Positions 1-9,970 of a DNA stretch of 64,000 nt are shown piece after piece. The DNA lies in assembly GCA_047495785.1 (NCBI GenBank), contig JBLDXI010000032.1:2542001-2606000 (forward strand), read 5' to 3'. The position numbers and the translations under genes are program-made. Origin of the DNA: Lepidodermella squamata. Lineage: Eukaryota; Animalia; Gastrotricha. The notes under the pieces are model-generated. The model saw only the letters and a program-made list of their open reading frames with translations, had not been told where the DNA came from and made no database searches. How positions within the stretch are numbered: the first letter of the stretch is position 1; each line of letters begins with the position of its first letter.

Positions 1-646
1 TCGGCGTGAGGCCATCGAAGTCGAGCGCGTTTAAATCGGCGCCGTATTCAACGAGTAGCTTCACCACGTCGGCCCGGCCGTAGTAAGCGGCTAGATGAAG
101 CGCAGTCGCCCCGCTGTAGTCGTCAACGTCATCTAACGAGGCGTTGGATTTGAGTAGTAATTGAGTACAAGCTAATTCGCCGTAAGCGCTTGATAAATGT
201 AATGGGAATCGGCCTAAATCGCCAGCCATAGATTTTGCACCGCATTTCAGCAACTTATCGACAACTTCAGGGTACCCCCAAGCAGCAGCACAGTGAAGGG
301 CTGTATTACCCGCATCGTTTCTAATATTTACATCACAACCCGCCGCTACTAATTCTTCGATTGCGGCTGGATTGCAGCATTCGACGGCTTTGAAGAGTCG
401 GGCGCAAAAATCGAGTTGAGCTTTGCCTGACGAACTGGTTTGAGCTTTCATAACAACTGGTTTCTTTGGATAGCCGTTTTGAAACAGGTCGTCAACGACC
501 ATTTCAGCAACATGTGGCACAACTTCGGTTGACACGCGGATCGAGTTGAATTGAACGTCGGCAGATTCGATGTAATTGAGCATCTGCAATGTTCTGAGGA
601 TTTTAGACTGCAAAAAGTCACTTTCACAGTCGGGCAGCAAATGAAA
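1..646 (-). CDS. Chimeric RNF216-N-like (CUE-like) + ankyrin repeat protein, copy 1 (runs off window; short first exon not located)
   Basis: Not in the ORF track. Hand translation from acceptor ttttcag at 647 gives FHLLPDCESDFLQSKILRTLQML...VAEMVVDDLFQNGYPKK, then ankyrin repeats GNTALHCAAAWGYPEVVDKLL, GDLGRFPLHLSSAYG, GATALHLAAYYGRADVVKLL; frame open to position 1. Confidence 0.85.
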
Positions 647-1950
647 CTGAAAAACAAGAAAAAATATTCGTTTTTATCTAGAGTGGAGCTTGTCTTAGAT
701 ATATATGTACGCGATTTCCCTGCTCGCACAAATGGGAATTAAATAGCTAATACTGTTAAATGGACACTCGCTACTTCAATCCAATAACAATCGACCTAGA
801 TCAGGTTCGGCGACGGTTGACTAGAATGAATAACTTTCTTAGTGCTCCCTCGAAAAGGTCAGCTATTCATTGCGGTTTCGTGCCCGTGTATTTTTGTCAG
901 CTTTTCTCTTCTGAGTACCGAACCGATAGATGTTGGTTGAAACGTCGCACGAATATATAACATCTTCATGAAATAAAATGACTCGAAACTGCACAAGTAT
1001 CTTGCTAAAATATCGTCTTTTCTCTTCTATTTCATTTTTTACTGACCTAATTGGCCGCTGATGGAAAGGACACCATAAAATATGTTATGTTTCTGTTTTT
1101 ATGTTCATCGCGCTGAGGTAGCTCAAACTATCGTTCTTCAATCGCTGGATATGGCCATTCTATCGCCGAAGTAATGGATGGCGCTGTGATATCACGCCAA
1201 GTTGATTGTAGAGTATGAAGATCTCGGAATCGCGGAGTTGAGATAGCCACAGGATATGCGTATCTATTCCCCATAGTTATGTGCGAATCAACATGACGTT
1301 GATGTTACACCACTTTGATAGCGATCAAGGAAGAAATAGGCCATTCACCCGCCACAAAACAATCGTTTTGTCTCGCTCGTAGTCAGGCGACGTTACTGTT
1401 TACATTACAAAGTCACTCTTTGGCAAATGCTCAGTCCTTTGGGCTTCCGCTTATGGGGTACTAGTTTCCGTCATCGACGATCGAGAAAAAGTCCTATTGG
1501 ATTGGCTATACCGCCACTGGCCACCGCCCAGAGTGGGTCCGTTCTAGATTACGCTTTGATCAACTTCGAAAGTTTCCATCGGATGGATAAGATGACCGTA
1601 ATAGATACTATGGACATTTCGGACCATCGATAGCCCGAGAAAAGCCCATCCTAGAGCGAATGCACATTGCACATTGACGAGAAAATCTTTGGTACAGAGC
1701 TGCGCAACATTCACCCTAACCCTAAAATCTAAACCTATGAACGAGCAGCCTCTTTTCAATAATTCGTGGCAATAAGATTTCTGCTTAAGAAGTTGAAAAA
1801 ACTTACGACTGAATTGAAAACTTCGGCCATCCCAAAACACTATCAACACAAAAATAAAACTCTATTCAATTAAAAAATTGCATATAAAGAAGAATCAGAT
1901 AATGAAAATTGGATTGAGTAAGAAATCATAACAAAGTTGGCACATTGAAA

Positions 1951-3435
1951 TTAATTCTTTGAGTATTTATCGAACATCTTGACAATTTTTGGTAGCTTTC
2001 CATTTATCGCAGCATCGACCGGCTTCCAGCCCAGTTTATCGACAATATCGAGTTTAGCACCAGCTTTCAACAACTTGCGAACAATTCTCCAGTAGCCAAA
2101 GTACGCGGCTAAATGAAGCGCTGTCGTACCTTCCCACTCGTCCACGGCATCAATTTTGACATCTCTACGCTTGAGTAAGATTCGAACGACTTTGAGATGA
2201 CCGAAAGAACACGCAGCATGCAATGGAGTACGGCCGCCTTCACCACATTCAATACGAGCATTGTTTTTAAGGAGATATTTGACAATATTTGGCCGGCCCC
2301 AGCTGCAAGCGTCGTGAAGTAAGGAGTTACCGTGTTTATCTTTCGCGTTCAAATCAATACCGACATGAGACAGCTGTTCAACCAGCTTCAGATCTCCGGC
2401 GCGCACTGCCAGCCGAAGTTTGCGATTCGAGCGACGAACTTGTTGTTTCAGCGCAGTTTCCAGCAATTTCTCATCGCTTATTTGTTCTTCCACTAGAGTT
2501 TGCGAATTGTTTTTATCCTTCAAAACACTACAAGACGCTGGTTGAGTTTTCGGGATGTGCAGCCCACAATTTTGTTCTCGAATTTCTGTGATTTCTCTCT
2601 CTAAATCACGATTGAAAATTTTCGTAATAATGATTGAAATACGAAGAGGTTCATTGACCGCGATACCCGATGAATCTAAAAAATCTCAAAATTTAACAAT
2701 GCATCGCTAAAAAAAATGGGAAATTATACCGGAAATAGTGATTTCATGTGACGAGTTTTTTGGCAGTAGGTGTTCCTTGGGATAAACAGGCTTCAAGGGG
2801 TCCACACAGAGTAGGTTGAAATCCTCGAAATACGGCTTGATCACATTCAGCAGGAAATTTCGAGTCTCTGTATACCTAGAAAGGCAAAGATTTCATGAAA
2901 ATTGCAAAACTGGGGCACGAAAATGCAAACTATTTTTCAAGGCCCGATTTTTTGAAAAGAGAACAGCGATGAGCAAGAAAGCAACAGACGAAAACAACAT
3001 GAGAAAGCTAGCTCGTGAATGAATTCTTTTCATATAAAAGCCATTCATTATTTAAATTTAGCTTATGAAAAATTTACAACGCCGGATAGCTTATTTATAC
3101 ACCAGCACAATAATAATAATAATAAATTTAGAAGCCGAGTGTTTTTTCAACAAAACATGAGGGCATTTCGCATGTCGCATGTGCGTAATGATTGTCTTGC
3201 ACTAAAAAATGCTTAAGGCCACCGAGATTGTTTACCTGTAACCTTGCATTGAGAAGGCCCGTTTAATGTCACGCGGCAAGATCCATCGGAATTCATTCAT
3301 CAACATCGCCTCTGCCTCGCATCGGTAGCTCAGGTCTCTAATACCGGTGATCGTAAGCGAATCCTTCGACAACAGCAAAGGATTGGATGGAACATATTCG
3401 ACCATGGCTGAAAACCGATCAAAATACCAGCGCAT
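1951..3435 (-). CDS. Chimeric RNF216-N-like (UBA-like) + ankyrin repeat protein, copy 2 (4 exons)
   Basis: Exons 3435-3236, 2875-2730, 2675-2643, 2600-1951 join in frame via GT-AG introns: EAEAMLMNEFRWILPRDIKRAFSMQGYR|YTETRNFLLNVIKPYF...VDPLKPVYP...VNEPLQREITEIRE, then ankyrin repeats (GEGGRTPLHAACSFGH, GTTALHLAAYFG). Start codon uncertain. Confidence 0.8.
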
Positions 3436-3601
3436 AATTTTCTATCATTGCCTATGTCATAAAAGATAACAACAATACCGCTATTGACAACTAATCGGAT
3501 AAAAATCTTAGTAGGAAAATATCGTAGAACAAAATAAAAAAATGTATGACAAAACAAGGATAAACGTCAGCGTTAGTCATAAAAATCTCGGAAAACCATT
3601 T

Positions 3602-4978
3602 TCACGTCTTGACTCTAGCGCTTGAAATCAAATCTTGAATAGCTTGATATTTCGCAACTTCAGGAGGTGACCGTCCACGCGAGTCTTTCACATCCAACTT
3701 GGCACCAGCTACAAGAAGGCAGGCGACGATTTCGTAGTAATTGAATGCAGCGGCAAGGTGTAACGGTGTCGCGTTGTCCCAGTGGTCCGGAGCATCTACC
3801 ATGAAAGATCTTTTGACAAGCGAACGAACAACGTTGAGGTGACCATGAGCACACGCCTTGTGCAAAGGGGTACGGCCGCCTTCACCCTGTGAATAGACAG
3901 CGCCGTGATTCAGCAAATACTCGACCACAGCCGATTGGCCCCAGGCGGCGGCATCGTGTAACGGCGTGTCGTTGAATTCGTTGCGCAGGTTCGGATTGGC
4001 ACCTTGCTTCAGCAACAGCGCCACGCGAGCCAGGTCACCCTTTTGAGCGGCGATGTGAAGCTGCGTGTCACCTTGTGATTTTTCAGGGGGATCGACAGCG
4101 CTCGATTTTGACTGCGAGACAGGCTCAATAGCACTGGTTTCGGCGGCCGATGTTATGCCGCTGTCCCTCGAAGAATTTAAATCTGAGCCAGAATTCTCTC
4201 CAACTTGCGGCGCCTCGCCATTTTTCTGTTTGTTGTAGATAGCCTCAATTTCACGCTTCAAAATCTGATCATTGACCTCCATTTTTCGTGATGCGCGGGG
4301 CGATAGAAGGATGTTGAAGACACCAAAGCCTGAAAATCCAAGATAACTGAAAATTTGATGTATTTTCAAAGAAAACGAACGAGGGTGTTTTAGTTTTCTC
4401 TCATTCTGATCAAGTAAAACCGGGCCATTCGGCCATTTCGGGTGAAGCGGATCGATAGAATTCTCATCGACATTACTGAGAAAGGGCTTGATCAACTCGA
4501 TTAGAAAATTTCGCGTTTCCGTGTAGCTGCAAATAAAGAAGCAACAAAAGGATGAAGAATCGCTGACAGATTCAGAAATTTCTCACGTTTTGTTGATGAA
4601 GAGAGCACGCTGGATACTATGAAGGTAGAACCACTTGAATTCGTTGCAAAGCAAAGATTCAGCCTCTCGATGGTAGAGGGCGAATCCGAGATAGCTCTGT
4701 TCATTCGAAGTTGCTCCGCTAACAGCAGGAGTCGCAAAAGGGTTACTGTTGCTAGGACGACTTTCCGGCTTTTCAGACGTGTTACCACCTTCCAATAATT
4801 CTTCAACAATTATGTGGACAATAGAGTTGATGGAACCACTCGGAACATCAACCGACTCCCATAATCCGCCCAAAGATTCGCCAGGGCTGGGCTTGGAGGG
4901 AAGGATTTCAAAAAGTCGTAAAGTTTGAATAACTTTCGCTCGCAGCAATTCTTGATCGCACGTAGGCAGCATTTCGAG
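3602..4978 (-). CDS. Chimeric RNF216-N-like (CUE-like + UBA-like) + ankyrin repeat protein, copy 3
   Basis: Exon 4978-4587 (LEMLPTCDQELLRAKVIQTL...EAESLLCNEFKWFYLHSIQRAL), 60-nt intron 4586-4527, exon 4526-3602 (YTETRNFLIELIKPF...QILKREIEAIY, ankyrins GDTQLHIAA, DTPLHDAAAWG, GEGGRTPLHKACAHGH, ATPLHLAAAF). A short upstream exon is likely. Confidence 0.85.
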
Positions 4979-5444
4979 CTAAAATGATGATTACATCATC
5001 AATTTCAGAGACTAGCAATTCAAATAAATTAAAATTCTGCTTCTCCTTTTTTCAAGATATTCCCGTAAGAAGATGACTTTCACACCGTTATTTATCGAGG
5101 AAAAATACCTAGGTAGGTTTGATTGAATCCATTTATTTCTATAATATCATGTCACGAAGTTGTAATATGTACAATATGTACAGTTTTGATTACATTTTGA
5201 AAAGAAACCAAGTATCCAAGGACTAAAATCGAGCATAAAAACGATAACTTACCACCGCTTTGAAAACAACGGCCATTTCTTTCAACAATGCTTATCAAAA
5301 ATTTCGAACGAAACTAGAAGAAAGACGGAAATTATGAAATTGAGCAACTTTACTGTGCAAATATTATCATGAAAGTCGCTTATTTCACAAATGCCATTCG
5401 ATAGTATGTAAAAATTCAACAAAATATTATTCGTCACAAATGAC

Positions 5445-6752
5445 TCAAGAGAGTAAAGCTGCCACGCCCACATGATTCGCCTTGCGAGCAGCATCCACCG
5501 GAGTCGATCCAGAACGATCTCGAGCATTCAAATTTGCGCCTCGCCTTACCAACTCAGCCACGGTATCTGAGTGGCCGGAATGCGCAGCCAGATGAAGGGG
5601 AGTTTCGCCATCAATGTCCCTCGCATTTACGAAAACTTCACCACTTTCGAGAAGAATCCGAGCAACCTCTACGTGGCCATTAGCACACGCTGAGTGAAGT
5701 GGCGTTCGTCCGAGCTCACCCGGTAAGCACATGGCGCCGTTTTCTAGCAAAATTTTTACAATTTCCGCAAACCCAAGACTGGAGGCTTCGTGTAAAGCGG
5801 TATTTCCGGTTACATCGACTTTATTGATATCAGACCCACTTGAGACTAGAGCGATAACAAGGTCGAGATCGTTTGATCGAACAGCTTCATGAATTGCCCA
5901 TTCCCTGAATGGGTTTTCGAGACCTTGAAGGGGTGTGGATGGACGCGAATTTCCAGCGACATCAATAGGAGCTATTGCTAAAATTCGAGTTTGTTCATTC
6001 ACAGGAGTAGGCGGAGTCCTTGCGACCTCATTCACAGGTTCAGGGTTAGAATTTCCCACATTTTCAATCGGAGCGATGGAGACGATTCGAGTTTTCTTCA
6101 AAGGCGTGATGGCTTTGGATGGCCCAGGTATTTCGTCTTCCAGGTGCCCTTCCATACCACGTGAATCATTCGAGTGAACCGAGTTGTCAGGCGTAGCGAA
6201 TTCCGTGGAAAGTGTAGTATCCTGACAGTTTGGAGGCTCGTCAGCCGAATTTTCTCCGTTAGGGAAATTGAGCACACTATCATCAATTCGTTCACTCAAG
6301 CGATTTTCCGAGTCGTGAACGTGATTCATAATGCTTGGGGAAGGTTTCACTTCAAGGTATTCCACGTCGTCGACTGGTTCATCTTTTACATGCAGGTCAC
6401 ACAAGCTATGCCGCGGGCGCTTTGATGATATAATTGGCAACGAAGTTGCTCTTTTCTTCTTTTTGCCAGAATTATTCGCATTTGCTAATGGAAATCCGTT
6501 GTTAAGTAAGTCGTCAACGACTATTTGAGATAGCTCCGTTACTTCATCACGATGGATTCGAATGCCGGTGAAAGAATCGCGTTCAACGGCTCCAGATTTA
6601 GCGTAACCAATGTCTTGCAAAAACTCCAAGATTTTCCGCCGCAAAAACGTTTCTTCAACATTAGGAATTAGATCACTCTGAAAGAAAACAACATAAAACA
6701 CTGAAAATGGGGCTGTTACGGAACAGACCACGCGTCTAAAAATAGCTGACAT
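5445..6752 (-). CDS. Chimeric RNF216-N-like (CUE-like) + disordered linker + ankyrin repeat protein, copy 4
   Basis: ORF 5445-6752 with a probable in-frame 51-nt intron 6728-6678, giving MSAIFRRV|SDLIPNVEETFLRRKI...IVVDDLLNNGFP. C-terminal ankyrins GNTALHEAS, GELGRTPLHSACANGH, GETPLHLAAHSGH. Confidence 0.85.
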   Translation of the reverse strand: MSAIFRRVVCSVTAPFSVFYVVFFQSDLIPNVEETFLRRKILEFLQDIGYAKSGAVERDSFTGIRIHRDEVTELSQIVVDDLLNNGFPLANANNSGKKKKRATSLPIISSKRPRHSLCDLHVKDEPVDDVEYLEVKPSPSIMNHVHDSENRLSERIDDSVLNFPNGENSADEPPNCQDTTLSTEFATPDNSVHSNDSRGMEGHLEDEIPGPSKAITPLKKTRIVSIAPIENVGNSNPEPVNEVARTPPTPVNEQTRILAIAPIDVAGNSRPSTPLQGLENPFREWAIHEAVRSNDLDLVIALVSSGSDINKVDVTGNTALHEASSLGFAEIVKILLENGAMCLPGELGRTPLHSACANGHVEVARILLESGEVFVNARDIDGETPLHLAAHSGHSDTVAELVRRGANLNARDRSGSTPVDAARKANHVGVAALLS

Positions 6753-7576
6753 TTCAGGTCGAAACGATCATGAGTTTTTTGTGATGTCGCTCCCTCAGCT
6801 AAATGTAACGTAACAGATATTCTAAATTTGAAATAAAATCAACATAGACTGCTTATTTGTTCACTCAGAATATCCATTTTCTTTTTTATTCGCCCGATAT
6901 ATACGGATGGGCCGATGCTTGATTATATGAAAGCATATAACGCATAAACGTTGTTTTTATACACCGGATTGGCAAGAATTATCCGACATGAAACCATAAA
7001 AAAAAACTAAATTTCAAGCGGATTTCAAAGAAATATGCCGCCTTTGAAGCGTACCGCAACGTAGTCTTATTTTGTTCAATATTTTGTTGCGATATATTCT
7101 AAAAAGGAGGTTTCATGGTAGATAATTCTCGGCAACATTATTGAGTTTTTATGACTTGCATTTCGTCGAGGTGTAAACATATATATTTGTTACGTAGACA
7201 TACCATCGGTATCAAAATTTGAATTTATACTACATGTTTATCAATATATGAAAACAAAGATTAGACATCATAACAAAGACTGGATGTTCAACAACCCATT
7301 GATAACACAGTTTCGAAGAGTTCGAAGTATTGGTATATAATATATTCATCTCATAGCAGACATTATCTCACAGGGGCTAATCGATAGACTGATTCGAAAC
7401 AAATTAAGCATATTTATCGGATTTGAATAGTCAGTGTTGAACGGAAGACACTTTTATGCAAGACCCTGGGTAGGAAAATTCGAACTGAGCAGTTTCTGTT
7501 GCTTTTGAGCAATTCCGTCATCGCCACCAGAAGACTAAAATTGACAAATAATTCGTTATGATCATGAATCGCAACC

Positions 7577-9285
7577 TCAAAAGCAGCTTACTTCTAATTG
7601 GCGTTTACGATCAGGCGTGAGAATCCCTGATGAACTAGCTTCGCTCAGTTTAGCTTCGAGCAATTTCTTCTGTCGAGCCTCGCACTCTTGCTGCCGCTGT
7701 TTTTTAGCCTCCTCTTCAAGCGCTTTAATGCGCAGCTGATCAGCAGTTGCAGGGTCAATCCAAAGTGAGCATTTCGTGCATTTTGTGCAGCTCTTTCCTG
7801 GATCGCGAACGTCTTTGCAAAAATGTTCGTAGCCAATGTTGGGCGCTCGGCAGACGTAGCACATAGTTCCACCACAGGAGCACGTCATCTTGTTGCAACC
7901 TTCCGTTTTGACTATTTCGGTATTGCATTTGGGACACTGTCGGATCAGAGCCTTCGTCATTTCTTCTTCGTAAGCGCGGCGAAGTCGAGTTTCAGACCGG
8001 CCTTCGACTTCCTCGCAAGATTTTCCGAAATGTTCTTTATCCCACGGCTCTTGGCACCGTCGACAAGAGGCGAACTTGCAGCTGGCGCAAATCAATACTT
8101 TTTCGTTTGCTTCCAGTTGATACTGTGTCTGACACTTAGGACAACGAACTAGGTCAGCCAATCCTGAGGCAGTCACATTGTAAGCGCTAATTCTTTCTTC
8201 GAGTTTTTCCATCTCTTCAGGCGTTACTTTGCAACAGAGCATAGCTATGAGGCGGGACAATAGATTCTAAAATAATTACTCGAAGCCAAATTGTTGACGA
8301 CTTACATCTAGGGAAACTCGCATCACACGTGTTCTCCATGCATTCAAGGTAACCGTTCTTGACTCCGACTTCAATTTTGACTTTCACGTACTGGTTCAAG
8401 CAGTCTTGGCAGAATAAATGGCCCTCGGCGCACGCAACAAGAGACTCAAATGTCGTGTCGGTGTAACAACACTGGCAAGCAATCAGCATAGCTTCACTCT
8501 CATATTCTTCGAAATTCAATTTTTCTGCTAAGGTTTTGTCCTTCGATTCGCGGAGCTGGTATATCGCTTGGATTTCGGCGAGTAAAGCGGGATTTTGAAC
8601 ATTTATCCGACGCTGATGGCGAGAACTGGAGAGCAACTGAAGTCGACCATAGGCTATCGAAAGACAAATCAAATTTTCAAAGTTTTCAATTTCGACATCA
8701 AATTTACTCGGATGATTGATGGCACGATCAGCAATCGATAAGCGATGAGGATAATTACTCGGCTGGACCGGGTCGACAATTTCAAAATTGAAATTTCCAA
8801 CATATGGCGTAATAATTTCCATCAAAAGTCCACGAGCTTTGGAATAGGTTCCGCCACGTCTGAAAATTCGCTGGATAGCGCTCAGATAGAACCATTTGAA
8901 CTCATTTTGGAGCAACTGAATAGATTCATCGTTGTATTGCTAATCGAAATACAATTAAAATCACAGTTTGAAATAAGTTCTAAATACCGACCTGATAATT
9001 TGCCGGAATATTTGGAATGGGCAAGTTCGCCGGTATAACGGGAGCTGGAGGTGGAGGCAAAACTTCAGGTTCCCGCTCGTAGCCATTATTTAAAAATCGA
9101 TCAATAACGATGGTAGTGAATTCCTGGACAACGTCTTCGGGTAATACGATGCCATTCAACTCAGCATTAACAGGAACTTGGGCGATTCCAAACTCATTGA
9201 TCATGGTAATGATTGTTTCGCGCAGGAAACGATCTGCTATGTCCGGCATAATGTCCCGACAGGAGTCATAAATGGCTTGAGCCAT
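7577..9285 (-). CDS. RNF216: RBR-type E3 ubiquitin ligase, RNF216/TRIAD3-like
   Basis: Exons 9285-8992, 8939-8306, 8244-7577. RING1 (IACQCCY...CAEGHLFCQDCL), IBR (CPKC...CASCKFASCRRCQEPW..HFGKSCEE), EEEMTKALIRQCPKC, RING2 KTEGCNKMTCSCGGTMCYVCR, C-terminal HFC...CSLW typical of RNF216. Confidence 0.88.
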
Positions 9286-9329
9286 GGAGTTTAATTAATA
9301 CCAGGACCTAAAATTACAAAAATAACTTA

Positions 9330-9970
9330 AAATTTCTATCAATTTAATGTGAAAAGAAGATTCGGGCGAAAATTGGCAGGGATGAGAAATGAGCAGTTTT
9401 ACGAGATCATTTGTTTTTGGCTTCATAGAATGCTTTCCCCGCCTCAATCAAAGCAGTCAGAGGAATTTCAGAGAGCAAGGATTTGCATTGGTCAGCGATT
9501 TCGCACTGCGCGAGCTCAGCACAGACTGTGTTTGAAGCAACCGAGGCTTGCTTGGCGAATTTCTGAAAAGGAGTATACTGATAATGGAATAGCTCGCAGC
9601 CAATAAATTCCTCTCACCGAGTTCGTGAGCAGTTCTCGCAATCCGTCGACATGACCATCTAACACAGCCGAATTAGTAAACCCACCATCGGCGCTAGATA
9701 GAACATTGGCTTCTCGGAGCACCTTGCAGTTTCCGGGCAGAGCATGGGAGCTGGACTGTTGCGGCTTACGCGATTTCTCAGAATTAATAGCAGCTTCCGC
9801 AATTGTTGCATCGAGTAAGGGGTCTGGCACTATTTCTGCAGGCTTGCTAACAGCGGATATCAGAACTTTTCTTGGCTGTCATAATCAAAGTTACGTTTTA
9901 ACTAAATATCAAGAGAAAACCCTACCAATTCGCTTTGGCCTTGTGTGGAAATAGGGCGGAGGGTTCGCAT
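9330..9970 (-). CDS. Possible small uncharacterised spliced gene
   Basis: Open frames joined by plausible phase-0 introns (MRTLRPISTQGQSEL|PRKVLISAVSKPAEIVPDPLLD...LRELLTNS|KFAKQASVASNTVCAELAQC...). No motif recognised; boundaries approximate. Confidence 0.3.

Follow-up and report, generated by a model that had tools for sequence, protein, structure and literature searches.

RBR-less relatives of the RNF216 N-terminus joined to ankyrin repeats beside an RNF216-like ligase gene of Lepidodermella squamata

Locus and gene models

The DNA considered here (hereafter the window) is a stretch of 64,000 nucleotides (nt) from the gastrotrich Lepidodermella squamata [contig JBLDXI010000032.1, positions 2,542,001 to 2,606,000, forward strand]. 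Its first 9,285 positions hold a gene for an RNF216/TRIAD3-like ubiquitin ligase with a RING1-IBR-RING2 (RBR) domain, here called ligase A, and four genes, c4, c3, c2 and c1, in which related N-terminal modules stand before ankyrin repeats and the RBR domain is missing. A preliminary description had seen in the four a new chimeric family arising from the neighbouring ligase by partial duplication and domain shuffling. This description is partly supported, being right on anatomy and fold class and wrong on parentage. The locus is of the animal-type eukaryotic kind with short GT-AG introns. All five genes are on the minus strand, in the order ligase A, c4, c3, c2, c1 when counted down from 9285, and an intronless, highly conserved Skp1 gene lies directly upstream of ligase A. 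The features are as follows.

7454..9285, minus strand: ligase A (RNF216/TRIAD3-like RBR, A-type), model of 535 amino acids (aa)
9285-8992, 8939-8708, 8653-8306, 8244-7592 and 7534-7454, minus strand: exons of ligase A, the introns predicted from GT-AG sites and orthologue alignment
9076..9285, minus strand: module 1 of ligase A (aa 1-70), CUE-like three-helix domain
8553..8939, minus strand: module 2 of ligase A (aa 99-209), UBA_RNF216-type region and conserved segment to ...LLAEIQAIY
8707-8654, minus strand: predicted intron within module 2 of ligase A, 54 nt, phase 1, donor G/GTAAAT
8493..8540, minus strand: MIU-like motif DKTLAEKLNFEEYESE of ligase A, directly ahead of RING1 and not found in c1-c4
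8477-7751, minus strand: RBR domain of ligase A (Pfam IBR_1 2e-11, IBR 3e-10)
5445..6752, minus strand: c4 (copy 4), 418 aa; mini-exon 6752-6729 (MSAIFRRV), main exon 6677-5445
6752-6489, 6488-5907 and 5906-5448, minus strand: module 1, S/P/N-rich disordered linker and ankyrin block of c4
3602..5276, minus strand: c3 (copy 3), 429-aa model; exons 4978-4587, 4526-4381 and 4329-3602
5276-5253, minus strand: mini-exon of c3 (MAVVFKAV), predicted from homology
4380-4330, minus strand: intron of c3, 51 nt, predicted from homology (HP-x-[YHF]G alignment)
to 4784, 4678-4229, 4228-4070 and 4069-3605, minus strand: module 1, module 2, linker and ankyrin block of c3
1951..3435, minus strand: c2 (copy 2), exons 3435-3236, 2875-2730 and 2675-1951, continuous reading frame; 356 aa, or 346 aa if the second Met is used
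3327-2581 and 2427-1954, minus strand: module 2 and ankyrin block of c2, which is without module 1
1..1830, minus strand: c1 (copy 1), incomplete and continuing past the window edge; mini-exon 1830-1807 (MAEVFNSV)
646 to the edge, minus strand: exon of c1 after a 1160-nt intron, with module 1 to 467 and the ankyrin block from 409

The module sets of the four genes are combinatorial: c3 carries modules 1 and 2, c2 carries module 2 only, and c4 and c1 carry module 1 only (in c4 the hidden Markov model [HMM] of module 1 scores 86 bits and that of module 2 gives no match). With the same HMMs no further copies or remnants of either module were detected in the six-frame translation of the entire window, and a degraded module 1 was sought, and not found, upstream of c2 and of gene B on L001, a scaffold from a related organism described below. 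In c1 the first intron has a GTAAGT donor and a CAG acceptor.

Ankyrin repeats, four to five per gene, are recognized by Pfam in all four copies [Ank 1e-26 to 5e-32, with 5.5e-32 for c4 and 1.2e-26 for c1; Ank_2 2e-24 to 2e-30]. The blocks are colinear and gap-free relative to each other, and all four show the G[ED]xGRxPLH signature to which the preliminary description had drawn attention. The open reading frames (ORFs) are intact although the mutual identity of the blocks is just 34-43%. No IBR or RING match was obtained for c1-c4 in the Pfam scan. The peptides originally quoted all lie on the minus strand as placed, save that copy 2 reads ...DLEREITEI and not LQREITEI.

Two smaller features of the proteins may be recorded. 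Within the disordered linker of c4, at about 5950-6120, a direct repeat is seen at protein level (TRIVSIAPIENVGNSNP... / TRILAIAPIDVAGNSRP...). A basic KKKKR patch stands right behind module 1 in c4, with similar patches in c1 and in genes C and D of L001; these may be nuclear localisation signals.

Homology to the N-terminus of the ligase

When the N-terminal parts alone were compared by BLASTP, the ankyrin and RBR parts having been cut away, ligase A aligned with c3 over 223-234 residues [93 bits, 2e-26], and also with c2 [4e-13 in one run, 1.6e-12 in another], c4 [2e-10 to 4e-9] and c1 [6e-7 to 9e-7]. Between the chimeras the values were 1e-16 for c1 and c4 and 2.5e-15 for c2 and c3. By these scores the N-terminal similarity is far above chance, and the original proposal that all four ankyrin genes share the non-catalytic N-terminus of the ligase [2e-26 to 9e-7] is borne out.

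In c2 and c3 the homology to ligase A stops at ...EI[QE]AIY, approximately 25 residues short of the first cysteine of RING1 and ahead of the MIU-like motif DKTLAEKLNFEEYE, a more exact placing of the end point that had been put just before RING1. The motif of ligase A, DKTLAEKLNFEEYESE, aligns with the canonical consensus EEKDRI.A..LNE.QYEEE. Since the homology stops upstream of this motif, the chimeras retain the CUE-type domains only; and as they have no IBR or RING match and their homology ends some 25 residues ahead of RING1, c1-c4 are relatives of the RNF216-family N-terminus and not ligases.

Transcription and splicing

The RNA evidence consists of contigs of an RNA-type run, X1, which contains 56% of the words sampled from the region; ligase A lies outside the RNA-compared stretch and its introns are predictions. 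A single RNA contig of 704 nt runs through 3415-3236, 2875-2730 and 2675-2327, that is, the N-terminal, middle and ankyrin exons of c2 in one ORF, with the GT-AG introns 3235-2876 and 2729-2676 removed and a cDNA adaptor at 3415. RNA junctions were likewise found in c3 (intron 4586-4527) and c4 (intron 6728-6678), both GT-AG, and the c1 intron 1806-647 is given by an RNA contig whose loose end, at 1807, corresponds to the window at about 620-650. No RNA depth is left in the large intron of c2 or in the spacer between c4 and c3, and therefore these contigs are transcripts and not contaminating DNA. The deepest contig coverage in the region is that of c4. The chimeras c1-c4 are real spliced mRNAs which combine N-terminal modules with ankyrin repeats and are without RBR; the splicing of N-terminal to ankyrin exons, by which the preliminary description had proposed to be judged, is carried by these contigs.

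The spacing of the genes is very tight. The c3 mini-exon begins 169 nt past the c4 stop and the c1 mini-exon 121 nt past the c2 stop, and an RNA contig of c4 ends at 5358, about 80 nt ahead of the c3 ATG. Spacers this short suggest either operon-like transcription or extremely compact promoters. The same contig (1208 nt, 5358-6565) ends on its other side, at 6565, in a plus-strand A run beside K-rich codons of c4, which has the look of an artefact of internal priming or of assembly and not of a genuine poly(A) site. The first intron of c1 (647-1806) measures 1.16 kb against a local norm of 51-61 nt, and has RNA contig depth of up to 18 at 1201-1600 with "opposite strands" joints at 1200/1285 and 1500/1595; some other element, possibly one that forms a hairpin, is transcribed there.

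Identity of the ligase and of its N-terminal modules

Ligase A is recognized as an RBR ligase by its IBR_1 match [2e-11], by 61% identity of its RBR to that of L001 gene A, and by a clade with RNF216 paralogues (100/100). The labels PF26191 [RING-HC_RBR_RNF216], PF26200 [Rcat_RNF216] and PF26112 [UBA_RNF216] are attached to the L001 locus and to 57 homologues of the L001 gene A RBR, which come from cnidarians, molluscs, algae and diatoms and of which several are named RNF216/TRIAD3. These labels were taken from precomputed annotation, the Pfam set scanned here being without the PF26xxx models, PF26112 included; for PF26112 the precomputed match, on an orthologous 90-aa ORF in L001, is a "weak" one.

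Module 2 of ligase A, c2, c3 and their relatives was aligned by hhalign with the 200 residues preceding RING1 in 14 canonical, PF26112-bearing RNF216 orthologues, and matched over 120 columns [98.9%, 1.4e-17]. This profile alignment to the RNF216 N-terminus, which the preliminary description had suggested, is thus significant, and module 2 would be the region that Pfam calls UBA_RNF216. Module 1 matched the canonical RNF216 domain with the pattern LFPDV..YL..LLE..YPK [96%, 4e-9], the canonical segments having been picked by this motif pattern; with untrimmed segments the same match falls to 25% [8e-4]. The canonical domain itself resembles Pfam CUE: the match of a diatom RNF216 [7e-6] passes the threshold and those of two others [7e-4 and 0.03] do not. 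On this profile evidence module 1 would be the CUE-like domain of canonical RNF216, with an insertion of about 20 residues between helices 2 and 3 in the window lineage. In cnidarian-type RNF216 (P0010, P0017, P0021) residues 1-60 contain an extra CUE-like domain (...LRPIFPQ...CIDLLL) ahead of the LFPDV domain and UBA_RNF216, making three small helical domains in a row, and module 1 of the window fits the second of them better.

The AlphaFold2 model of module 1 of ligase A is a confident three-helix bundle (helices 2-12, 18-32 and 50-67; predicted local distance difference test [pLDDT] 93.2). It has the CUE-type pattern of three helices, a hydrophobic-hydrophobic-Pro motif after helix 1 and a di-leucine-type end of helix 3. 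The first motif reads IMP in ligase A, LLP in c1, MLP in c3 and LIP in c4; the helix 3 dipeptide is Leu-Leu in c3 and c4, Phe-Leu in ligase A and Leu-Phe in c1, followed by N/Q/E-G-G/NG (FL..NG in ligase A). Superposed with VIA-align on the Cue2 CUE domain 1otr the model gave a Z of 4.4 and a root-mean-square deviation of 1.5 A over 42 residues, at rank 34, so that a CUE fold for module 1 is compatible with the modelled structure and not discriminated by it.

Further searches with parts of the modules were uninformative: the module 1 profile gave chance matches only among PDB sequences, c3 exon 2 and the module 2 exon of the ligase found only low-scoring bacterial clusters in the ESM Atlas, and residues 1-110 of c3 exon 3 had no match in a protein collection that is without the proteins of this genome.

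For human RNF216, passages of PMC7458406, citing Seenivasan et al. 2019, describe a consecutive pair of CUE domains which binds K48, K63 and M1 chains. The same passages state that mutation of the CUE domains leaves catalysis unaffected and that these domains are dispensable for activity, and they place MIU-like helices on both sides of the RBR. The CUE/UBA character first ascribed to the modules is supported by the two profile alignments (96% and 98.9%), the three-helix model and these passages.

The orthologous locus of a related eukaryote

A profile of modules 1 and 2, run against 1.84 billion representative proteins, retrieved only three true matches, all of them ORF fragments on unannotated contigs. 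From two of the three the metagenome scaffolds L001-L004 were reached, which belong to a related eukaryote. That the profile finds so little is explained by rapid divergence of the region: L001 gene A, the orthologue of ligase A, is 61% identical to it in the RBR and only 33-37% identical in the N-terminal modules.

The 22-kb contig L003 has a cluster of genes A-B-C-D flanked by NDUFB10, a TBC RabGAP gene, a NARF-like gene and a SOCS-box gene. In the window TBC, NARF-like and SOCS-box genes stand beside ligase A in the same order as in L003. The two loci are orthologous and syntenic. In the relative, RBR-bearing genes occupy the place of the window's chimeras, L001 genes C and D both keeping a full RING1-IBR-RING2. 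Synteny extends over L003 1-9000 and window 12000-36000, and the gene adjacent to the ligase differs, being Skp1 in the window and NDUFB10 in the relative. L001 gene C (7292-9460) has module 1 but lacks module 2, and its complete RBR is followed by a long coiled coil and a proline-rich tail; module 2 can therefore be lost from a catalytic paralogue too.

Behind the last RBR exon of gene D, L001 has an ORF of seven ankyrin repeats. Here the flanking coding sequence is identical in the haplotypes L001 and L004, and the approximately 75 nt between show 11 substitutions and two 1-nt indels. Behind the acceptor TTTTTTCAG the ankyrin part opens with ATG in one of them and with TTG in its counterpart. 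Use of a GC-AG donor of phase 0 (AAT/GCAAGT) joins ...EERIRRIN to [M/L]AAQAELDKAKKERNK with the frame kept, and the joined reading continues the E/K-rich helix seen after RING2 in other paralogues. Only this GC-AG pair fits the junction in both haplotypes; GT donors were rejected, phase-1 pairs giving a stop and the phase-0 GT of L001 being absent in L004. An apparent RBR deletion in L004 was also discarded, being really a scaffold gap of Ns. Gene D probably encodes a protein of the order CUE-like, UBA_RNF216, RBR, helix, ankyrin.

Deletion of the RBR from a gene of this type would directly yield the layout of c3. The junction in c2 and c3 falls inside one exon, and in A and D the end of module 2 (2c) and RING1 are likewise in one exon. 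Between c1-c4 and L001 genes B and E the ankyrin blocks align colinearly and have the same shortened junction of repeats 2 and 3; gene B is ankyrin-only with exactly the repeat layout of the c genes.

Parentage of the chimeras

A first mini-exon of eight codons followed by an intron is found in c1, c3 and c4, and a matching feature exists in L001 genes C (MSVIYNSV/GTCGGT) and D (MSLNAQIFRSV/GTACGT). Both A genes, that of the window and that of L001, read through at this point and have no intron. An intron inside module 2 is common to c2 and c3, that of D lies within about two codons of it, and both A genes are without it. Between modules 1 and 2 an intron is present in both A genes and missing from c3 and D. 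There is no doubt of a phase-1 intron after "HP" in L001 A, where reading through meets a stop codon and the GTAAAT donor is identical; in c2 RNA confirms it at a distance of a few codons, and in ligase A and c3 it is a prediction.

Pairwise comparison of module 2 places D closest to c3 (42%) and c2 (34%). In module 1, c1 is nearest to C among the L001 genes and nearest overall to c4, and c4 is about equally close to C and to the A-type ligase. The maximum likelihood (ML) tree of the RBR domains groups the A genes of the window and of L001 (85/73) and genes C and D (95/92), with all four together at 100/100 on a long stem; the duplication that separated A from C/D is therefore lineage-specific and older than the split of the two organisms. 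Judged from these comparisons, the neighbouring A-type ligase is a cousin of the chimeras and not their parent, and c1-c4 are best read as C/D-type RNF216 paralogues that lost the RBR. The loss is read in this direction because an N-terminus followed by an RBR is the ancestral RNF216 layout.

Origin and possible function

We put at roughly 65% the probability that c1-c4 are expressed, catalytically dead descendants of the C/D lineage which have lost the RBR and act as ubiquitin-reader/ankyrin adaptors. The C/D-type lineage would have split from the A-type ligase before the window organism and its nearest sampled relative diverged, and a C/D paralogue was probably already joined to ankyrin repeats before the RBR was lost. 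The loss of the RBR part would then have fallen within an exon, in the stretch from the end of module 2 to RING1, and would have joined module 1 and/or module 2 to a block of four to five ankyrin repeats, and the tandem copies would afterwards have kept different sets of modules. The CUE-type modules may bind (poly)ubiquitin as in human RNF216. If the ankyrin repeats bind a partner, the proteins would be non-catalytic adaptors of the ubiquitin-reader type; they could vie with RNF216-type ligases for shared ubiquitinated platforms or, alternatively, feed those ligases. The gene structures, the splicing, the homology, the assignment to paralogues and the synteny are established here; we infer the direction and mechanism of RBR loss, the binding of ubiquitin and the adaptor or competitor role, as well as the decoy, adaptor or regulator role first imagined for these genes. 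The RBR was not "replaced" by ankyrin repeats; the introns, the tree and the synteny point to its loss from an older paralogue instead of to fresh shuffling.

Several points weigh against this interpretation. The ML tree of module 2 was poorly resolved and not used, so that paralogues were assigned by their introns, by pairwise scores and by the RBR tree. Both C-type (c1, c4) and D-type (c2, c3) N-termini bear ankyrin repeats, and this needs two RBR losses or recombination between copies; moreover, RBR-bearing genes of C/D type could persist beyond the left edge of the window. The fusion in gene D depends on a GC-AG intron the basis of which is the haplotype comparison and not RNA, and, given the ankyrin-only gene B, the source of the ankyrin block is ambiguous. 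As to the modules, no window gene has a direct Pfam CUE or UBA match for either of them at E<=0.1, nor at E<=10. The model of module 2 is weak (pLDDT 65) and was folded with intron read-through. Of the fold checks that had been proposed, the AlphaFold2 model of module 1 came out well; Foldseek searches with both module models against PDB and AFDB Swiss-Prot gave nothing significant and did not retrieve human RNF216. Ubiquitin binding is known only for human RNF216 and for c1-c4 is a prediction by homology.

A bolder form of the adaptor idea, which we offer as speculation and would ourselves doubt, regards c1-c4 as a lineage-specific "anti-ligase" set of pseudo-E3 proteins that read the same ubiquitin signals as the neighbouring ligase and use their diversified ankyrin surfaces to divert or deliver specific clients. 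K63-type signalling would be tuned in this manner in a genome with an expanded set of ankyrin-recognition genes, and the relative would keep the catalytic intermediate, an RNF216-ankyrin fusion ligase.

Alternatively, the N-terminal modules might serve mainly for association with RNF216-type ligases or with cofactors of these, and not for reading ubiquitin, the ankyrin proteins acting as E3-bound substrate receptors or inhibitors. The genes lie beside the ligase in its orientation, with very short spacers between them, ankyrin repeats are typically substrate-binding, and CUE domains are able to dimerise, as does that of Vps9. Interaction with the ligase is, however, purely hypothetical, and the variation in module content between copies speaks against one fixed interface. 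Passages of PMC7458406, moreover, have the human CUE domains as ubiquitin-chain binders dispensable for activity. We regard such an interface as unlikely.

Very unlikely, in our opinion, is that the chimeras are decaying, functionless remnants of ligase duplicates, transcribed yet unused. One could point to the missing catalytic domain, to the piecemeal loss of modules (module 1 from c2, module 2 from c1 and c4) and to the fast evolution of the N-terminal modules, 33-37% identical even between orthologous A genes. Decay would hardly be expected, however, to leave all four ORFs intact over 350-430 codons despite 34-43% ankyrin identity, with GT-AG introns retained and spliced, the CUE-type motif positions and the ankyrin consensus residues conserved, and the deepest RNA contig coverage of the region on c4.

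Least probable of all is the course originally proposed, a recent partial tandem duplication in which the 5' part of the adjacent RBR gene captured an ankyrin block, for although the genes are adjacent, co-oriented and homologous from the first codon, and the best total bit score of c3 is with ligase A (93 bits, owing to the long alignment), it is contradicted by the introns (A-type genes lack those of the mini-exon and module 2 and have one between modules 1 and 2 that c3 lacks), by chimera identities to ligase A of 22-33%, no closer than to the relative's paralogues (c3 and D reach 42% in module 2), by the RBR-bearing C and D at the relative's syntenic locus, and by the RBR tree, which puts the duplication before speciation.

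Comparison with known systems

RNF216 is the ligase of Gordon Holmes syndrome. What the locus presents is a lineage-specific rewiring of a known enzyme family; it is no new kind of system and holds no new biochemical principle. In it a ubiquitin ligase family can be seen, in a well-resolved natural example, to have shed the catalytic core and retained the ubiquitin-reading domains. It offers at once an orthologous locus in which the ankyrin-fused precursor, still catalytic, seems to be preserved, four paralogues that differ in their modules, and splicing backed by RNA, and with these a tractable system for the role of the little-studied CUE/UBA_RNF216 region on its own.

Ligase A is a member of the RNF216/TRIAD3 family (human Q9NWF9), and c1-c4 have the CUE-like and UBA_RNF216-type domains of that family. 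Unlike its members they are without RING1-IBR-RING2, the MIU-like helices and the catalytic cysteine, and have ankyrin repeats in their place. The nearest counterpart in the relative is the probable fusion gene D (with E; L001 9.6-12.3 kb), which shares with the c genes the mini-exon, the place of the module 2 intron, colinear ankyrin repeats and the neighbourhood; it differs in having a complete RBR and seven ankyrin repeats as against four to five.

Ankyrin repeats and ubiquitin are brought together elsewhere in ANKRD13, a non-catalytic ubiquitin-reader adaptor with ankyrin repeats and ubiquitin-interacting motifs (UIMs), and in ANKIB1, an ankyrin-containing RBR ligase. Compared with the c genes these have an unrelated ubiquitin-binding element, a UIM and not CUE/UBA, and the opposite order of domains, and they are not homologous to RNF216.

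A search of 5.8 billion clusters with N-terminal halves from ten canonical orthologues retrieved RBR ligases and one exception, LOC144641389 (P0089) of the coral Oculina patagonica. No protein combining CUE/UBA_RNF216 with ankyrin repeats was found in this search, in which database coverage of the lineage is thin, and the RBR-less RNF216-ankyrin architecture looks lineage-restricted. The coral protein has CUE-like and UBA_RNF216 regions, no RBR, and an interaction domain from the point where RING1 would start; unlike the c genes it has a Death domain and not ankyrin repeats, and is the uncharacterised product of a single gene and not of a tandem family. It is an independent parallel event, and, taken together with the chimeras described here, it marks the N-terminal region of RNF216 as a portable evolutionary unit.

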